A DNA stretch of 63,950 bases, the filler included, from Guillardia theta CCMP2712 (Eukaryota > Protista > Cryptophyta), in NCBI RefSeq assembly GCF_000315625.1. It is 3 parts of 3 records of this genome, joined end to end, with 100 filler letters (N's around TTAATTAATTAA, not from the genome) between each part and the next. Parts side by side here need not be neighbours in the genome. Positions count along the whole stretch, not along the records: positions 32,578 to 63,950 come from NW_005434388.1; 2 more parts are not named here. The stretch is one strand, 5' to 3'. The position numbers and the translations under genes are program-made. Below, piece by piece: positions 49,999 through 62,739 of this stretch. The first letter of the stretch is position 1; each line of letters begins with the position of its first letter. The notes beneath the pieces are model-generated. The model searched no databases and was not told the origin of the DNA. It saw only the letters and a list, made by a program, of their open reading frames with translations.

Positions 49999-52906
49999 AT
50001 GTCGGGGGGTCGGATTGCAATGGCGAATTATGTGGGGGTCGCGGTGATGGCAGTTGTGTGCTTGGCAGGAGCGGCAAGAGCAGGAGCAGGAGCAGGAGCA
50101 CATGCTCCAGGAGCTTCACGTGGAGCATGCTTTGGAACTTCATTTGCACCTGCACCTTCTCTGTTAAGATCGCACAACCATCCGCTCTCTTGTTTCTCAT
50201 TCAACGCGCTCAGCAGAAGCTCAAGGTATCTGCTGTCTCCGCACAGAAGGTTTGTAGAAGTAAGAACACCAAATGGAAAGCGTTTAGAAACTAGCACGGG
50301 ACTGAGAGGAGTTCAAGCCGTGTCCAAGGAAGGGGTGGTGATTGGAGTGAACAAGTATAGCCATGATACCTCTGTGTGCATCACATGCTGCAAAACCGGG
50401 GATCCTCTCTTGATCTGGTCGAAAGAAAGACATTCACGTCGCAAGCACGATGGAGGTGACATTGCAGGAATGATGCAAGCAGCGCTCGAGGCCCTCGACC
50501 TGTCCCTGCACGACGTCACGTTGGTAGTGAGCAACAATCATCACTTTCGTGTCTTGCCCTACGAGGAGCAGCATGAGCAACTTGCCTGGTCGGCAGCTCT
50601 CGGGCACATTCCTGAGAGCTACACAAGCGATCTTAATCTCTTGCCCGGGGCGAAACACCTCGAGCTCTCGCATCACCTCGCGCACGCATGGAGTGTCGCA
50701 GCGCAGGCCCCGTTTGACGAGGGGCTGGTGGTGGTGATGGACGGAATGGGCGAGTCATTCTCAGCCATGCAGTCAGCTAAAGCGAGGGAAGAAAAGAATT
50801 ACTTCCATGACCTTGCCCTGGCCGAAGATCAGAAGTGCTTGTCAAAGCAGAATGTGGAAGAGGAATGGACAAAAGCTCGGCACGGTTTTCGGGAGGCAGA
50901 GTCAGCTTACATGTTTAAGAGAGACAGAACGACAAACACCATCAGATTCAGTCGGGTAATGAAAAGATGGACAGAGGAATTGTCTCCTCCTGAGCTGTAC
51001 AATCACGGGTTTGAAAACATGGAGTCCGTCGGCGCGGTTTACAGTCGAGTGTCAAGCAACATTTTTGGAGATTGGAATGCTTGCGGCAAGGTAATGGGTC
51101 TTGCCCCCTGGCACAGTCTGTGGAGCAAAGACAGCACGCTGCCACCTCCAATCATGCGAGGAGATTTACTTGAGAATAAGCTCGATATTAACCGCGAGGA
51201 ATTGATGAAAACCCCTCTAGCAGGACAGAAATTTGGACTAGACGCCGGCGATTGGTCTGAGACCACCAAGTACTCGGCCGTTGCTGAAGAAGCGTCAAAA
51301 CTTGCGTATGCGGTGCAGAAGGACCTTGAGTCGATTACCTTGAAGCTGATCAAGGATCTCAAGACACACACAGGGGCTAAGAACTTGTGCTTTGTCGGCG
51401 GAGTTGGGCTCAACTCGGTGTTGAACGGCAGGATTAGTCGAGAGCTGGGCTTTGATAAAGTATACATTCCTCCTTATCCCGGAGATGACGGCATCGCTGT
51501 TGGCTGCTGCGCTTTTGGCCTATTCTCTGAGCATGGTCGCAAGGTACTTGAGCAACAAGAGCAATCTCCCAAGCTCTGGGCTGGGCCCCTCTCACCGTAT
51601 CAAGGCCCGAAGTACTCCCTTACTGACCTTCAGGAAGCCATGGACTCTTCCCTTCCTTGGCTTCTGATCGAAGAGGCACAGAGTGTCGACGAGTTTGTTC
51701 ATCGCATGGTGCAAGAGATGGCAGACGGGCAGGTCATCGCTTGGTGGCAAGGGCGGTCAGAGGCTGGTCCACGAGCCCTCGGGCATAGAAGCATCTTAGC
51801 TGATCCTCGCAAAGCCAGCATGGTGTCGTTCATCAATAGCAAAGTCAAGGGGAGAGAAGCCTTCCGTCCTTTCGCGCCCTCTGTGCTTGCAGCAGGTAGC
51901 CCTCGTGTTGAGGCCTGAGCTGTTGCTGACGACCTGGCAGAGGCGCATGAGTGGTTTGAAGGGATTCCTGCTGGAAGTAGCCAAGGGGACGTGAGCCCAT
52001 ACATGTCCATCACCAGCTTTGTCAAGGATGACAAGCGAGATAAGATTCCAGCAGTCACGCATGTCGATGGAACGTCGCGTCTACAGACTGTGACTCAAGA
52101 TTCCGAACCGCTTTACTACGCTCTCATCAAGGCATTCTTCCGACTGACGGGTGTGCCGATGGTTCTAAACACATCGTTCAACACCATCAAGTCAGAGCCC
52201 ATCACTGAATCCCCTTCCGACGGCATCCGCTCGTTCTTGAGCGCTAGAGGCTCCATCGAGAAGCTTTTCATGGAATCCAAGTGGATCATCTCAAGGAGAC
52301 CGTTCCCTTCCTTGGACTTGAGCTCGGACGAGGAGCTGAGCGCTGTGTATCCTCGCATGGCTGTAAGGTCGTGCGATTGAGGTGAGATGCTGACGCGTGA
52401 TGGCAGGGAATATTCGCGTGTGAGACTTCAGAGAGTATCGGGGAGGGAGGGGAGGGAGTTGTGACTCGAGTCAGAGTATCGATGCCGTCCTCCATCACGT
52501 CAGTGGGAGATGAATGGAGGTGACCGACCTGCTTATCATGATGCAACTATCAACATTTACATGTAGAGTTTTGACGGATTCCCTGGAGTCCGAGATCCTT
52601 GCAAGGTGACATCGTCAAGCATTGGAGTTGATCGATTCACAATGTCCGCAGTTGCAATGGAGAAATCTCTGTGTTTGAGATGCTCGAGCTCTTTGTGACA
52701 AGAGAGGTGTGACATTGTTGAGACAAGCGTTGAGATGACGGGATTGCAGACGAGCAATGAAGAAGAAGAAGAAGAAGTACGTCTCGAAGAGCCCGAGGAT
52801 CTCACTGACTTATGGGCAGGTAACAAGGGAGGACGTGCTTGAGAGGCTGCAAAATCTCTACCACCTCTGCCTGATCTACTTCGACTGTAACATTGCTTCA
52901 GTGTGA
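49999..52906 (+). CDS. NodU/CmcH/TobZ-family O-carbamoyltransferase with a bipartite (signal + transit) leader
   Basis: HDTS, HHLAHA, DGMGE, GKVMGLAP, GGVGLN, PGDDG, GRSEAGPRALGHRSILADP, VKGREAFRPFAPSV, PAVTHVDGTSRLQTV, LNTSFN, EPITESP. Confidence 0.93.
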
Positions 52907-53487: not shown

Positions 53488-53599
53488 TTTTAAACATACA
53501 TGGTTTTAAACACACATGGTTTCAAACATACATGATTTTAAACATACATGGTTTTAAACATACATGGTTTTAAACATACATGGTTTTAAACATACATGG
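53488..53599. repeat. 16-bp tandem repeat TTTTAAACATACATGG, 7 copies, followed by one TTTAGGG
   Basis: Seen directly. Confidence 0.92.
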
Positions 53600-54233
53600 T
53601 TTAGGGCTCACGGCAGAGAGGGGTAATATGGGTACCTACAGGGGTACCTAGAGACCTCTAGCCGGATTTCGGCAAGTTTTTACTCAAAGCCTCCAAGTCG
53701 GTTCAAACCGACTGAAAATTGCTTCTTAGTACCGAAATACTTACTCAATCAATGAGGCTTAGATGTCCGGTAACTCCGGCAACTCCGAACCGCCAATGTC
53801 TACTTTACTCAATTTTACAGCATTTGACAGTGTTTTATTATTTAAAATTACCTCGCTGACCCTGACACTACTAGTAAAGTGTTATTACTAAAGTAAAGCT
53901 CTTATAAATCTTCTGTGGACCCCCACTAGCAAGCTCTCGTACCCCCCATTATTGTAATTAAATTAGATGGTCAGCCTTTTTTTTCTGGCGAGGCTGGGAT
54001 GCTCGAGGCGACAGGAGAGGAGGTACAGGCTGAAGGCAAGCAGGAGGCGAACGCCTAGGAGAAGACAAGAGACAAGAGACAAGAGACAAGAGAAGCCAGA
54101 AGAGAAGAAGAGCGAGGGAAAATCAAAGGGAAGAAGAATATTAAGGAGTGCAAATAGACAAGAGAAGAGGGGAGAGTAGTAGAGGAGACGGAGACGGAGA
54201 CATCCAACTACAAGGGAAAACAGCAAAAAGGCT

Positions 54234-57200
54234 ATGACTGAAGAAGCCAACATCGCCAACTGTGCTGGTACTTCTCGTGACGAAGACATGGAGGTTTCAT
54301 TGGCAATTCAATCGGAATCCTCGTCGGGTCTGATCTCTCCTACGGATCTGAAAGATTTCTGGGAGGCGCGCCAAGAATTCACTTCCAACTTCGTCCGAAT
54401 GTACACTCAGCTGCCAGGAGACAACATGCAGCGAAGCCTCAACAAGAATGTCATATACCAGAAGAGGCCAAAGCTTGTTCTCTTCTCACAAGATCCGATC
54501 TCAGCAGCGATGGCGCTCACTGGGTTTCGCTTCTTGCTCGGTGCCGGGGGGTTTGCTTGGATTGTGGCGATAGCGCTCAAGGTAAAGGAGGTGCACGGGT
54601 CGGGGTATTTCGCGTACCTGATTGAGGAGAGAGTGCGACAGTTTTCCATGGCAGACATGACGGAAACAGGAAAGCTAGCATGTGGTTGGGAGTCGTTCTT
54701 GGAGGTGTTCACCAACTTCCTTGTTGGTGTGATTGCTATGGCTGCAGGAATGTTGAGCATGGTGAGTGTGAGGCTAGTCAAGCAGGTGAGAAGTTGTGTG
54801 GGCAGTGATATTGATTGCTCAAGCTGTCTTGTTTGCCTGCAGATCATCATAGTGGGTGGACTGATAGATGCGGCTTGCAACTTGTGTGTGTTTACACAGA
54901 TGATGCTCACCGCACGCGAAAGGACGGTGATGGGGACCACATGGTATGTGTTCTTGATCGCCATGCTCACGGTGAGACAGAGGCAGTTGTCAAGGTTGTT
55001 GATTGAACTTTGTGTTGGCAGGACTTGTTGATTTTTCCCCTACCTTTGATCCGATGGGAAGCATACACAATTGAGCTGATAGCAGTGGGGTCGCTCATTC
55101 GAATTATCAGCATCGCTGCAAGCTCGACGGTACCGTACAAGTGCCTTGCCATCTTTGTTTTCTTTGCGACGTTGCTTGGATTGCGAGAGGGGATTCGGAG
55201 GCGGATGATGAACAAGGCAGCGGGCCTCGGAGAGCAGTTCGACGAAGAGTGGAGGCAGCTGAGAGAGCTCAATGCGGTACAGGAGCTCAAGGAGGCTGTC
55301 TGCCGGGCTCAGGTTAAATCAACAATGTCTCAAGAAGTAGAAGAAGGAGATGGGGGGGGGAACTCGATCACATGGCTCAGACGACAGTCCCTGCTGTCTT
55401 CTTCGACATCTACCCTTCCGTCGTCGTCACAGCCGAGCATGATAGTTCAGTACGCGCGGGAGTGTGAGGGCAAGGATCTAGACCAGCTGTATTCTCAGGC
55501 GGTACTTGTGTCACCCATGTTCTTGAGCAAGGTACAGTCCTGGGCGGAGGCGAGCGACGGATATTTCCTCATGAACATCCCGTCAGCAAAGAGGAAGCAC
55601 TACCTTCGATGGCGAGACTGCAAGGACGACAGCTCCAAGCTTTCTCGAATCAAATGGGCGTCCATCAAGAACGCTAACCGAGCCATCGAAAAGATCCTGC
55701 TGTTGTGCAATGGTGATACGTCGAAACTTACAGACGTGGTCCGTCAGACGATCGTGTTCAAGGAGCTGCGGCAGCTTGTCGAGTGCGTGGAGGTCATCAT
55801 CAACGACCCGGAAGTGGAGGTGGTGAGGATCAAGAACCGGCTCGACCCGGACTACGACGCGTCGACGTCGGGAGGCTACAGGGACGTGGGGATAAACTTG
55901 CGGGTGATCCACGAGGGGGCGAAGAGGTGGGGGGTAGCTGGGCACGTCTGCGAGCTGAGACTGGCGGTACAATCGCTCCATGCCCTTATAGACTCGCAGC
56001 ATCATGCGTTGTATTTGTCGATGAAGACCGTTCTTCGTTTCAGGCAATCACAAGAGACGGAAGTTATGAGGGGGAACGAGCAAACAGAGAGAAATCAGGA
56101 CAGGAGGAGACGGTCGTCGACGTCGTCGGCGACATTGCTTCCTACCCACATGTCGAGCTCCATGGGTTATTCAAAGTCTCTCGCGCAGGAGAAATCCGAC
56201 ATTTCGCTGCTTATCTACAAGAGCATGTATCCCGGCAATATTCTGGACAAATACCTGACATCTTCTGGTCATGGCGTGTCGAAAGCTGATACAACGAGCA
56301 TTCTGTATTCGTCACACCCGCTGAAGAACGTTCTGCACAAGACTTTGTTTCAGCTGCTGCTGCTGCTTGCGGGGATCGGATTTATCATTCTTTACAGCAA
56401 CAACTTTCGGTTGAATTTAATCTTCACCAATCACGTTTTACCTGTTAGGCATGCCAGGTTCACATTTGAAGGGTACAAGAACATGAACATCTCTATCAAA
56501 GACCACAGCGTGAGGATAGAAGACTTTCTCCTCGTCAGAGACTCTTGTCAGGTGTACAACTGGACTTCATCCGTGACAGTCGCGAACAAGGTCTTCTTCA
56601 CGTTCCCTCATCTGGTCTATCCCAATGGCTTCAAAATCAAGCTGACTCCGGCGCTCATGTCGTACCTCAAGACAGATGCGCTCACATTCCACTACCTGAC
56701 TGAAGAGGGCGTTGAGGACGTGGCGGTTGACAGAAAGGAATGGAAATATGTCATTCCTCCTTCGGTAAGCTGCAAGCTTTTCCCTTCGTTGCCTCTTTGT
56801 CAATCAGACTTTTTGCCTCGTGCTGACGAGTCTCTTCTTGTTGACTTGCGCTTCACCTGGCAAGCGACTTGCATATTCCTCATGGCGATGCTGCAGAGCA
56901 TATGCTGTCTAGGAGCCGCATTCTTCGCCCGGCTTGGGAAGGTTCAGCTCGCAAAGCTCTTGTTTACCTCTGCCTTCCACCTTGTCGGACTTTTTGAGAT
57001 CTTTGCTGCTTTGTCCCCCGAGTCTCTGTATGCCAATCGGAGAGACTTCTTCATCGCATGGGGAGTGCTCGACGTGTCGGTGGGTCTTGTGGTTCAGTTC
57101 CAAGAGCGCTACATGCTCAAGGCCTTCGTCGTCTACTGCACGATCTCAGCCTTCCTGCCTCCTCTAGCTCAATACTATTGGGACGCGTCCAAGCTCAAGG

Positions 57201-58125
57201 AGTCAGACATCGGGTTGAGCAGCCTAGTCTTGCTTGCTCTGGTTATCTTCTTCGTGTTGAACAGAAAGTTCATCGTCTACAAGTCTCGGTGGCAGATCAG
57301 AGGAGACCAGAAGATGTACGACGACTGCTGGAAGGACTTGCTATCCCGGGAGGAAACTCAGCAGCTCCTGAGCTCCCTCAAGATAACATGCGGGCGGGTA
57401 AGGCCGCAGCCAGCGCTGCAGTTGAAGATCTTCGATGCCTTGTGCGAGGTGGAGCTTACGATTCTTGACCCGCTGTCGAGCGTGTTGAGGAGACAAAGAA
57501 CAGCAGCTTTGCTAGGACTTACTTGAAGCGGTCAAAGGGGACGATTATGAAGCAGGACAGGGAGATTGAGTCCCTCGACCAGCTGTACGCGCAGGCGATC
57601 TTGCTGGAGCCAATGTTCTTGAGCAAGGTGCAGTCCTGGGCGGAGGCGAGCGACGGATATTTTCAGGGGATGGAGGGGGATCTAATTCGCTGGAGGGAGT
57701 GCGCAGAGGAGGCAGAAAAGGCGTCGCAGGTCAAGTGGGCGTCCATCAAGAACGCTAACAGAGCCATCGAGAAGCTCGTCAGGTCCTACTTTGGGAGAGT
57801 CTCGAAGCTCACAGACGTGGTCCGTCAGACGATCGTGTTCAAAGAGCTGCGGCAGCTTGTCGAGTGCGTGGAGGTCATCATCAACGACCCGGAAGTGGAG
57901 GTGGTGAGGATCAAGAACCGGCTCGACCCGGACTACGACGCGTCGACGTCGGGAGGCTACAGGGACGTGGGGATAAACTTGCGGTTGATCCACGAGGGGG
58001 CGAAGAGGTGGGGGGTAGCTGGGCACGTCTGCGAGCTGCAGCTGCTGCTGGAAGAGTTCGCGGCACTGAAATCAGCGGAGGGGCACAAGAGATACGTGAT
58101 CTTTAGAAACTCAAGATGTGAGTAG
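54234..58125 (+). CDS. Polytopic membrane protein with two RelA/SpoT-like nucleotidyltransferase domains (6TM-SYNTH-6TM-SYNTH), ~1240 aa, 4 exons
   Basis: Predicted introns 54786-54842, 54972-55021 and 57449-57498 join the ORFs in frame. Both domains carry IKNANRAIEK, TDVVRQTIVF, RIKNR and GGYRDVGINL; they end in CELRL and CELQL respectively. Confidence 0.75.
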
Positions 58126-59399
58126 AGAATGGAGGTGATAAAAATGAATCAAGTGCATGAAGGGAGAAAAAAGGTGTGCTCTCATGAAGATTCGCCCGAT
58201 TTGTTAAGTTTTGAGGTAATTGAAATAAAATCAAAGTGGAACGAAAAAAGCCTAAAATCACCGCAACAAAAAGATGCGAAAAGCATCTCAGTGATGCTGT
58301 GATCAAGCCACATCCCTCCTCGTCATTCTCATCAATCACCATCTTCTCTTCTTCGTTTTCTGCTGCCTTTCAAATCTTTTCCTTCCCACGTCCCTTCCTT
58401 CAATCCTCTCGCTTGACTCTCTTTGCTCTGTTTCTACCTGTTGGAATTCATAAGTCATCAAAAGATTTTGAGGGAGCTGCACAAGCAGATCGATCGATGA
58501 AATGCATTTAATTATTCTACCTTTGCTTGCCTCTCAGTGTTTAGATTTACGTTCCTCAACATAGCTCAAGACATCTGGTTCGTGAAGAAGCAATTCAGTC
58601 CTCTGAGGGATGAATTGGACTTGCTGCGCAAGCAACAACCCCCGGCGTGTACTTCTCTCCCATCTGATTAGTAAAGATGAGATTGTTTGTTGATCGTCGC
58701 GCCGTGGTCGAGCAGGGCGACGGTCTGGTGAGCATGAACTCGAGAAGAGCTGATGCTGACGGGGAGCCGAATAAGATCGGGTAAGGCGAGCTGTAGCTGA
58801 CGGCTGAGGGCTAAGCAGGGGCAAACATGGAGTTGAACCGTAGGAAGGGACGCGGCCGTTGAGCACGACGCGTTCCGATCAGCCTCCGCGGCAGCACGAA
58901 ATGGCTTAGCGAGCTCCGATGAGAAGGTAAAGCGCTGCTACCTGGTACTACGGTAAGAGAGGGCTGGGACAAAGACCAGCGGCAGGAGGAGCGAGTGATG
59001 CTCCCCTCTCTTTAGCTGCCGCTGCTACTCGGTTCCCGCACGCGTCGCGAGCGGTTGAAGAGCAGCTAAAAGCTGAACATGCTGTTTATGCTGGGTCGTC
59101 ATGAGTTTGTCATGGCGCTCCTGCTGGAGGGCGACTTCGCGCTTGTATTGCTCGCAGTCCGGCTTGATTTAGCAGTGGCTTGATTTTTAGGCTGCTTGGA
59201 CGTCAGTGGGTCGCCATCGTGATCTTCATCTTCATCTTCAAGATCCTGCTCGAACCCTCTCAGGAAGGTGTCACTGTGTTGCAGAGCGGCAACCCGCACT
59301 CCACCACGTGCTCCGACCATCACCCGCTTGCCGCGTTTGAACTGTACAACCCCTTGCTCGCAGCTAAGCCCGGCCTCAGTCTGGGGAGGCCCGGGATTT

Positions 59400-61239: not shown

Positions 61240-62522
61240 CCGTTATTTTCGGCAGAAGGCCGTTATTGTCGGCAGCATGGCTCCTTGCCTGGTTTAGGGT
61301 TTAGGGTTTAGGATTTAGGGTTTAGGGTTTAGGGTTTAGGGTTTAGGGTTATTTCAGGCACCATGGCTGCACGCGTGGTGTAGGGGAAGCTGCCAGGGCG
61401 CCAAGGAAGCTGCAAGCGAGAGGTTTGTATACTTCAAATAGCTTTCTAAGTATGGTTCTTCAGTATGATGAAAATGTTCGCAACCTGCTGTATCGGAGAT
61501 CATGCCAATACACGCAGAGCGGACTTGTGGATGCCTCTGTCCTCGAAGCTGATCTCGTCGAGAGGGTGAAGAGCTTCGCGAAGCGTTATCCGAACAGCAG
61601 GACAGCCCAGGCTTGCAAGGCTGTGGAGGGATGCACCCCCGACGCTATCGCAGAAGCCATCCGCTCGACATGTCAGCAGGCACGACGTGAGCTTCTGCAA
61701 GAAGCGATGGCTGGATGGAGTGACGCATCCAGAGAGTGGTTTATGCAGCAGATTGAAGAAGCCAAGAAGGAGAAGGTCGAGACATACACCGCCTCAGCAG
61801 GCAACGAGGTGACTTCCTTCATCTCCATGACTCTCCTGGGCATCTCCTCGGTGTATGTCAACCATGAGGAGAAGTTGAAGAAGAAATTTGAAGAGATCGG
61901 ACTGATCGTAGACTCAGTGCAAGAGAGTAAAGCAATCATGTGGAAGGCTCCGTATAGACCCGAGATAGCGAGTGCTGAGGAGATCCCGGTGACTGTTTCC
62001 TTCCTCCGCAATGCACAAGCGGAGAAGCTCTGGCAGGGAAGAGAGGACTTCGCGATCGATGGTCGCAAGTTCACAGCTGTACATGTGAGCATCGTGCACG
62101 ATCGATCTTTCAAGATTCGAGCCAAGAGAGGACCCTGGGGCAAAGGGGGCAGCTTGGCAGAGCTGACTCACCTGCTAACCTTGGGCGGCATGACAACGGC
62201 TGAGATAGCTGCCGTCTATCGCTATCAGCTGCTGCGCCAGTCCCTTGCAGCGGTCCAACTCCAGCCGCTGGCAGGCATGCTGGTCGCTGGGGCGCCAGGC
62301 CAGCAAGTCCACAAAGGCTTAGGTCAGAAAGGCTTCATCGCTGTAGGGGCCAACGTCATCTGGAGACAGAGGGAGGTGGAGTGGATCGTCTATTCCGAGC
62401 TGCCCAGAGGCAAATGATACAGCATTTCGAGCTTTCCGAGAGAGCGAAGCGATGGAGGGAGTACACCTGACTCTGTTCAGCGAGGACCCGAAGATCAGAG
62501 AGGCGCTCGCAGTCGAGTTGAC
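61240..62522 (+). mobile_element. Telomere-associated element, copy 2, with an internal (TTTAGGG)~8 tract at 61291-61350; truncated at 62522
   Basis: Head CCGTTATTTTCGGCA is identical to the copy 3 head; sequence matches copy 3 up to GTCGAGTTGAC and then switches to TTTAGGG. Confidence 0.85.
61452..62522 (+). CDS. Unknown ORF of the telomeric element, possibly RRM/ORF1-like; frameshift near 62395 and truncated
   Basis: The ATG (MVLQYDE) is conserved in copy 1; ISMTLLGI..EEKLKKKFEEIG..VTVSF..AEKL..IDGRKFTAV resembles an RRM beta-alpha-beta-beta-alpha-beta pattern. Confidence 0.55.
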
Positions 62523-62739
62523 TTTAGGGTTNNNNNNNNNNNNNNNNNNNNNNNNNNNNNNNNNNNNNNNNNNNNNNNNNNNNNNNNNNNNNNNNNNNNN
62601 NNNNNNNNNNNNNNNNNNNNNNNNNNNNNNNTTTAGGGTTTAGGGTTTAGGGTTAGGGTTTAGGGTTTAGGGTTTAGGACTTTAGGGTTTTAGGGTTTTA
62701 GGGTTTTAGGGTTTAGGGTTTAGGGTTTAGGGTTTAGGG
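62523..62739 (+). repeat. Telomeric (TTTAGGG)n tract, partly in a gap
   Basis: Seen directly, with TTAGGG and TTTTAGGG variants. Confidence 0.95.

Follow-up and report, generated by a model that had tools for sequence, protein, structure and literature searches.

A Guillardia theta membrane protein with tandem RelA/SpoT-type synthetase-like domains

The RelA/SpoT homologue (RSH) enzymes characterised before the report on exported alarmone synthetases all act in the bacterial cytoplasm (PMC12691689), and those of eukaryotes are known as soluble plastid enzymes (PMC6881373). The RSH1-4 and CRSH proteins of plants and algae are long, soluble and targeted to plastids, and they carry HD, TGS, ACT or EF-hand domains; the algal survey treats only the long, soluble, plastid-type RSH1 and RSH4 (PMC6881373). 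The exported synthetases demonstrate that domains resembling small alarmone synthetases (SAS) work outside the classical stringent response and that acceptor specificity varies within one clade; in the Tas1/Apk1 clade, the acceptor varies between adenine and guanine nucleotides (PMC12691689). Here, we analysed a gene of the cryptophyte Guillardia theta CCMP2712, which lies on the + strand at 54234-58125 of a 63,950-nucleotide stretch of DNA (the window), the part of the window from 32578 to 63950 being scaffold NW_005434388.1 (31,373 bp). The product is deposited as a 'hypothetical protein', GUITHDRAFT_122152, with no precomputed Pfam domain. It consists of two membrane modules (M1 and M2), each followed by a soluble domain (C1 and C2), and it is a new architectural variant in the RSH superfamily, deposited but uncharacterised. 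A preliminary description, made from the sequence alone, had proposed for this gene an adenylyl-cyclase-like architecture built from RelA/SpoT domains.

The soluble domains and their fold

The N-terminal domain C1 (55475..56065, +) and the C-terminal domain C2 (57559..58125, +, where the reading frame ends at its stop codon) are each about 190 residues long. They are 71% identical when 55475-56065 is compared with 57559-58122, which bears out the two copies of a soluble domain seen in the preliminary description. The AlphaFold model of C2 had a pLDDT of 92 and a pTM of 0.86. When this model was compared with the Protein Data Bank (PDB) by Foldseek, the top 50 matches were all RSH synthetases, with RelP (6fgj, E 1.6e-5) as the best; RelP, RelQ, CapRel, Tas1, the exported SaEAS, FaRel2, SpoT, Rel and RelA were among them. 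The VIA search with C2 returned RelQ 5ded at Z 14.0 (root-mean-square deviation (rmsd) 2.6, 146 residues), RelP 6fgk at 13.6, Tas1 at 12.0 (23% identity) and CapRel at 11.9, and the next fold class, the nucleotidyltransferases TdT and Pol mu, reached only about Z 7. The RelA/SpoT-type fold expected from the motifs was recovered in this way, and we consider it nearly certain that the soluble domains are RSH-fold domains.

At the sequence level, Tas1 ranked first (E 0.6) when C2 alone was searched against the PDB sequences. A profile of 38 family sequences gave exactly two matches at E<=10, Tas1 (E 3e-4) and B. subtilis YwaC/RelP (E 9e-4), both of which are RSH enzymes. The YwaC alignment spans all five synthetase motifs in register (family over YwaC: K..R..EK/VKSFESIVNK; D.vR/DIAGVR; KN/VKD; GYRD/GYRS; ELQ/EIQ; H.RY/HKIY), and the parallel in motif order that had been read from the sequence is upheld by it. 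D86 of the family profile aligns with the Asp of YwaC DIAGVR and E159 with the Glu of EIQIRT, and both residues are present in C1 and C2.

RelQ/SAS1 and RelP/SAS2 (5ded, 6fgk, 6ewz) are the best structural matches of C2 (Z 13-14, rmsd 2.4-3.2, about 145-152 residues). Like C2, they have a single synthetase domain without an HD hydrolase, and the five synthetase motifs can be aligned (motif 2 Asp, motif 3 GYR, motif 4 E.Q, motif 5 H..Y). RelQ and RelP are soluble homotetramers, whereas the domain here is fused to a six-helix membrane module and tandem-duplicated, in a eukaryote; the identity is only 12-16%, and K...R...K stands in place of R.K...S...K and D..R in place of D..G.R. These K...R...K and D..R forms of the ATP-site motifs are shared with Tas1/Apk1 (6ox6), the type VI secretion (p)ppApp synthetase toxin of Pseudomonas aeruginosa, which is also the best profile match and has the highest structural-alignment identity. 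However, Tas1 is secreted as a toxin domain against other bacteria and is paired with an immunity protein, and the protein described here is an integral membrane protein of an algal multigene family, in which no delivery domain of the Tas1/Apk1 type (PAAR, LXG or signal peptide) was found by Pfam. The exported synthetase SaEAS (8vx3), a single RSH-fold domain, matched C2 with a Foldseek E of 8.3e-5 and a VIA Z of 12.1 (PMC12691689). The exported synthetases are secreted, soluble and bacterial, whereas C1 and C2 are attached to membrane modules, with a predicted cytoplasmic orientation.

RSH1-4 and CRSH of plants and algae belong to the same superfamily and are, like the present gene, nuclear-encoded in photosynthetic eukaryotes. 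Unlike them, this protein has twelve membrane helices and none of their additional domains: Pfam searches with three pieces of the open reading frame (ORF) gave no family at E<=1 beyond noise, and no HD hydrolase, TGS/ACT, class III cyclase (PF00211) or delivery domain. A plastid leader was not recognisable either, the acidic N-terminus being unlike a signal or transit peptide as judged by eye only, with no predictor. The lack of an HD hydrolase and of a plastid leader had both been noted in the preliminary description.

To compare the two copies across the family, all full domains (25 C-terminal, 25 N-terminal and 121 single-domain copies) were aligned to the family profile. In the C-terminal and single domains, K64, R68, K72, D86, R89, K119, N120, G133, Y134, R135, N140, H156, E159, Q161, G175, H176, Y179 and R183 are near-invariant; D86 is present in 121/121 and E159 in 120/121 single-domain copies, and each of them in 25/25 C-terminal copies. 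Asp and Glu are retained in the N-terminal domains, but 16 of the 25 have R, V or L in place of Q161, Y134 varies in 12 of the 25, and variation is also found at R121, N140 and G175. The C1 of this protein is degenerate at family-invariant positions, reading ELR in place of ELQ and lacking the GH.RY...R motif, with Asp and Glu retained, while its C2 carries every family-invariant residue. Judged from this alignment, the combination of a conserved C2 with a relaxed C1 is the main new observation, and mammalian adenylyl cyclases, like other pseudo-dimeric enzymes, offer a real parallel to it.

C1 and C2 also share a 237-nucleotide direct repeat, whose copies at 55721..55957 (+, in C1) and 57802..58038 (+, in C2) are 98% identical. 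The pattern suggests gene conversion still under way within the gene, its extent limited by selection on the C-terminal part in which the two copies differ. The flanks of the repeat are far more diverged, and the tract stops exactly before the codon for Arg in C1 and Gln in C2, where ELR and ELQ differ. Two paralogs, GUITHDRAFT_115559 (P0161; 84% identical) and GUITHDRAFT_112018 (P0001; 57-61% identical), are collinear with the protein along its full length, and in them the C1 and C2 cores are near-identical within each paralog and different between the paralogs.

The membrane modules

The Kyte-Doolittle profile of the protein has six peaks at residues 97-285, one at 668-686 and five at 844-973, the last two groups being separated by a hydrophilic gap of about 150 residues. 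M1 (54522..55195, +) comprises the six hydrophobic helices at residues 97-285 (hydropathy, jackhmmer). M2 starts with a first transmembrane helix (TM1; 56342..56404, +, residues 668-688; hydropathy, AlphaFold), which is followed by a putative extracytoplasmic beta-sandwich with NIS and NWT sequons (56444..56845, +, residues ~702-835; strands at residues 63-196 of the AlphaFold model) and by TM2-TM6 (56858..57259, +, residues ~840-973), the last helix of which is predicted to continue into the cytoplasm. For M2, AlphaFold gave a model with a pLDDT of 84 and a pTM of 0.77 from a 41-sequence alignment; it contains TM1, the beta-sandwich, five long helices, the last extending about 20 residues past the membrane, and two more helices. 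Hydropathy and model agree with the preliminary description, which had placed two six-helix blocks in the protein and a loop of about 150 residues after the first helix of the second block. Between M2 and C2 lies a juxtamembrane helical linker (57260..57558, +; model helices 320-396), which includes a false intron described below and whose Y...W motif (KMYDDCW) is nearly invariant in the family alignment.

M1 and M2 matched each other in jackhmmer searches with profiles iterated among the fetched proteins, and on this ground they are homologous. Where M2 has its ectodomain, M1 has a loop of only about 48 residues, and by the same comparison M1 of this subfamily has lost most of the insert between TM1 and TM2. 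The distribution of the ectodomain differs within the family: the two-module relatives P0003, P0007 and P0027 keep an ectodomain of about 150 residues in both modules, and it is found only in M2 in this gene and in P0001, P0004, P0013, P0155 and P0157. In 118 fetched proteins, the membrane module co-occurs with the soluble domain.

Basic clusters follow TM6 of both modules (RRRMMNK, NRKFIVYKSRWQIR), the N-terminus is acidic, and N-X-S/T sequons occur in the M2 loop. Because of these features, the M2 loop is probably outside or lumenal, and both C domains would be cytoplasmic.

The resulting layout of 2 x (six helices + cytoplasmic catalytic domain), in the order M1-C1-M2-C2, is that of the mammalian transmembrane adenylyl cyclases, a likeness of layout only, as drawn from hydropathy, jackhmmer and AlphaFold. 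As in these enzymes, one catalytic copy is conserved and the other degenerate, and one-module relatives exist, as with the mycobacterial Rv1625c type, and presumably dimerise. The architecture named in the preliminary description is therefore retained as a layout and not as a homology, since the catalytic fold is RSH and not class III cyclase, PF00211 has no match, and an adenylyl cyclase membrane domain is absent from the best structural matches of the membrane module (Foldseek, VIA). The position of the active site also differs: cyclases have it at the C1-C2 interface, and RSH enzymes have it inside a single domain.

Searches with the M2 model gave no match against the PDB at E<=0.001 by Foldseek, and with the ectodomain the atlas fold search gave generic beta-sandwich proteins only, the best target-normalised TM-score being 0.62 (a DUF2808 cluster). 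In an exhaustive VIA search, M2 matched TMEM45A at Z 9.7 and bundles resembling G-protein-coupled receptors, rhodopsin and the adiponectin receptor at Z 7-8. These scores do not reach the mark that the tool gives for noise among helical bundles, and a kinship of M2 with seven-helix receptors is not claimed.

Proposed function and alternative explanations

The gene encodes a real, expressed polytopic membrane protein with a length of about 1261 residues, made of two homologous modules. In each module, a six-helix membrane domain is joined by a conserved juxtamembrane helix to an RSH-superfamily domain of the single-domain SAS type, which is predicted to be cytoplasmic; in M2, the probably extracytoplasmic beta-sandwich is inserted between TM1 and TM2. 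We propose that the ectodomain or the membrane domain senses a stimulus, which may be relayed along the linker helices to C1 and C2. C2 would then transfer the beta,gamma-pyrophosphate of ATP to the 3'-OH of a purine nucleotide, yielding (p)ppGpp and/or (p)ppApp, and the degenerate C1 would serve as a regulatory or structural partner. It seems to us fairly probable that the protein is an active, regulated nucleotide pyrophosphokinase. The further step to a receptor alarmone synthetase, in which an extracytoplasmic sensor controls the cytoplasmic synthesis of (p)ppGpp, (p)ppApp or a related 3'-pyrophosphorylated nucleotide, is tentative, and we regard it as conceivable rather than probable. Ligand gating and (p)ppGpp or (p)ppApp synthesis, which the preliminary description had put forward, are likewise what we infer for this protein.

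Several results weigh against a catalytic and sensory role. Neither C1 nor C2 had a match to Pfam RelA_SpoT (PF04607) even at E<=1, so the check for this family came out negative for both domains. In favour of the family assignment, 15 of 38 family members had weak, sub-threshold matches (best E 5e-4), and UniRef already names a few paralogs 'RelA/SpoT domain-containing protein'. NCBIfam searches with C1, C2 and M2 gave nothing meaningful. At the putative donor site, the canonical R.K...S...K reads K...R...K, with both Lys kept, the first Arg absent and Ser changed to Arg, and the D..G.R motif reads D..R with a shifted Arg, a donor-site pattern as in Tas1. Given these Tas1-like ATP-site motifs, substrate binding may differ from that of (p)ppGpp synthetases; because of them, and because acceptor specificity is variable in the Tas1/Apk1 clade, the product nucleotide cannot be read from the sequence. 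The prediction of a C1 + C2 complex had a score of 0.00, which says nothing either way on pairing. Since no convincing structural relative of the membrane module was found by Foldseek, atlas or VIA searches, the sensing role is a guess. Finally, some RSH-fold proteins, such as CapRel and FaRel2, pyrophosphorylate tRNA and not nucleotides.

The last point leads to an alternative in which the domains, like CapRel and FaRel2, pyrophosphorylate the 3'-CCA of tRNA, or modify another macromolecule, so that the protein would bring about a local or signal-driven shut-down of translation with no diffusible messenger. CapRel 7ztb indeed ranks high in the structural searches (Foldseek E 3.9e-5, VIA Z 11.9), with a match over residues 1-188 of the model, and phage and bacterial relatives appeared in the atlas fold search. 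However, RelQ and RelP score higher, the nucleotide-acting Tas1 has both the top identity and the best profile E-value, and membrane anchoring would be odd for an enzyme that modifies tRNA; we therefore rate this alternative as quite improbable. The domains might instead be non-catalytic regulators that bind nucleotides or alarmones, with the function residing in the 2 x 6-helix part, for example as a nucleotide-gated channel or transporter. Twelve-helix pseudo-dimers are typical of transporters, C1 is clearly degenerate, the donor-site motifs differ from those of canonical RSHs, and the domains are below the Pfam thresholds. The conservation of the metal-binding Asp and the catalytic Glu in nearly all single-domain relatives, and their presence in C2, is nevertheless the pattern expected of purifying selection on catalysis, and VIA found no transporter or channel fold above noise for the membrane module. 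A non-catalytic role thus appears unlikely to us.

It might also be asked whether the two-module protein is a gene-model fusion of two adjacent one-module genes, given that one-module relatives of 600-850 residues are commoner than two-module ones and that the deposited model did hold one false intron. However, an uninterrupted ORF of 838 residues (55010-57526) covers the last part of M1, C1 and the whole of M2, and overlapping contigs tile 56190-57984, from M2 into C2; therefore, both halves belong to one gene. More than 25 two-domain relatives, including independently called metagenome genes, have the same order, and a fusion artefact is very improbable. An active, regulated nucleotide pyrophosphokinase with two modules is the reading that we favour.

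The range of the family was assessed by a full HMMER scan with the domain, which gave 2193 representative clusters at E<=1e-3 and 196 at E<=1e-30 (counted as 50%-identity representatives). About 30 of the 2193 clusters have two domains and 1000-1700 residues. All matches with an organism name are cryptophyte (Guillardia, Hanusia, Hemiselmis, Rhodomonas, Cryptomonas), and the rest are metagenome or transcriptome fragments; G. theta has at least 16 gene models of the family. In the atlas search, the nearest clusters were labelled eukaryotic, with a few putative records from diatoms or ciliates that are based on 2-4 members, and the nearest clusters with Pfam RelA_SpoT were bacterial.

A literature search on RSH and alarmone synthetases in algae and eukaryotes, whose limited coverage is not proof of absence, found no description of a membrane-anchored or tandem RSH synthetase in a eukaryote. 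The text of the RSH superfamily survey (PMC3153485) is without the words transmembrane, protist, diatom or ciliate, and Guillardia and Hemiselmis are absent from the supplementary files of PMC12691689, including its list of 2,959 Apk1/Tas1 homologues. If the receptor proposal is true, the protein would be the first alarmone synthetase of the receptor type and, among the RSH synthetases of eukaryotes, the first outside the plastid. It would give cryptophytes a second-messenger system with the plan of the membrane adenylyl cyclases but another enzyme fold, in which one catalytic copy is active and the other regulatory. With its conserved C2 and degenerate C1, the protein independently repeats the design logic of the mammalian enzymes. 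The family would newly couple an outside signal to alarmone-type nucleotides, placed in the eukaryotic cytoplasm, which bears on the open question of the source of non-plastid (p)ppGpp-type nucleotides in eukaryotes.

Gene structure, transcripts and surroundings

When all three introns given in the preliminary description are spliced from the gene, a protein of 1244 residues without a stop results. It is GUITHDRAFT_122152 (P0160), residue for residue, and a word-indexed protein search with the long exon gave 100% identity. The earlier reader had re-derived an existing JGI gene model from raw sequence.

To examine the transcripts, four sequencing runs were aligned to 54100-58400, comprising contigs (X1, X2 and X4, from three different studies) and raw RNA-seq reads (X12). 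Exon 1 (54234..54785, +) contains the start codon, the acidic N-terminal region, TM1-TM2 and the start of TM3 of M1, as given by the ORF, the spliced model and the identity to GUITHDRAFT_122152. Intron 1 (54786..54842, +; 57 nucleotides, GT..AG, a multiple of three) is removed with GT..AG ends in the X4 contig, which skips the 57 nucleotides; its splicing is directly shown, and X4 therefore contains processed RNA. The X2 contig retains this intron, which has no in-frame stop and whose retention would put 19 extra residues into TM3; the retaining form may be unprocessed RNA or DNA. Exon 2 (54843..54971, +) encodes TM3 and TM4 of M1. Intron 2 (54972..55021, +; 50 nucleotides, GT..AG) was found by its pattern, and the frame requires its removal; the alignment of the same X4 contig ends at 54972, the intron 2 donor, and the junction peptide IAMLT/DLLIFPL is collinear with both paralogs. 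Splicing of intron 2 is thus indicated indirectly. Exon 3 (55022..58125, +) encodes the last part of M1 together with C1, M2, the linker and C2, and is most likely unbroken to the stop codon given a missing A near 57494. The 3' untranslated region extends for about 124 nucleotides to a poly(A) site (58126..58249, +). The X12 reads cover 57988-58275, and in three of them a loose A15 tail follows 58249; both transcription and polyadenylation of the gene are confirmed.

The preliminary description had joined the ORFs into one protein of about 1240 residues by three introns. One gene with a spliced intron 1 was confirmed by the contigs, whereas the third supposed intron (57449..57498, +), which is also part of the deposited model, is read through as coding sequence. 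At this junction, for which RNA evidence of splicing had been sought, contigs of X1, X2 and X4 cross unspliced, all with one additional A behind 57494; X4 is the run that also splices intron 1. One A is missing from the scaffold's A-run at 57495-57497, and the additional A joins the upstream to the downstream frame without splicing and regains 17 residues, VELTILDPLSSVLRRQ plus one residue (kept as X). As one A restores the frame, the protein has about 1261 residues, not 1244. The regained stretch is conserved in both paralogs, as VESTILDPLESVLRRQK in P0161 and LESTILDPLASMLKSQK in P0001. The third intron is an annotation patch over a 1-nucleotide error or variant in the scaffold A-run, and in practical terms the deposited scaffold and the GUITHDRAFT_122152 model carry a 1-nucleotide error that removes 17 conserved residues.

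The 5' flank just upstream of the start codon contains a 16-nucleotide tandem repeat (TTTTAAACATACATGG x 7) at 53488-53602 and an AGACAAG x 4.4 array at 54063-54093. The upstream neighbour (49999-51918, +) is an ORF of 639 residues with the N- and C-terminal domains of a NodU/CmcH-type carbamoyltransferase (PF02543, E 5e-20; PF16861, E 3e-25). On the other side, telomere-type repeats are found at 61291-61350 (GGTTTAG x 8.6) and 62632-62739 (TTTAGGG x 15), followed by AT-rich sequence (GC content 0.30) to the scaffold end. With some 3-4.5 kb between it and these telomere-like repeats, the gene possibly has a subtelomeric position.

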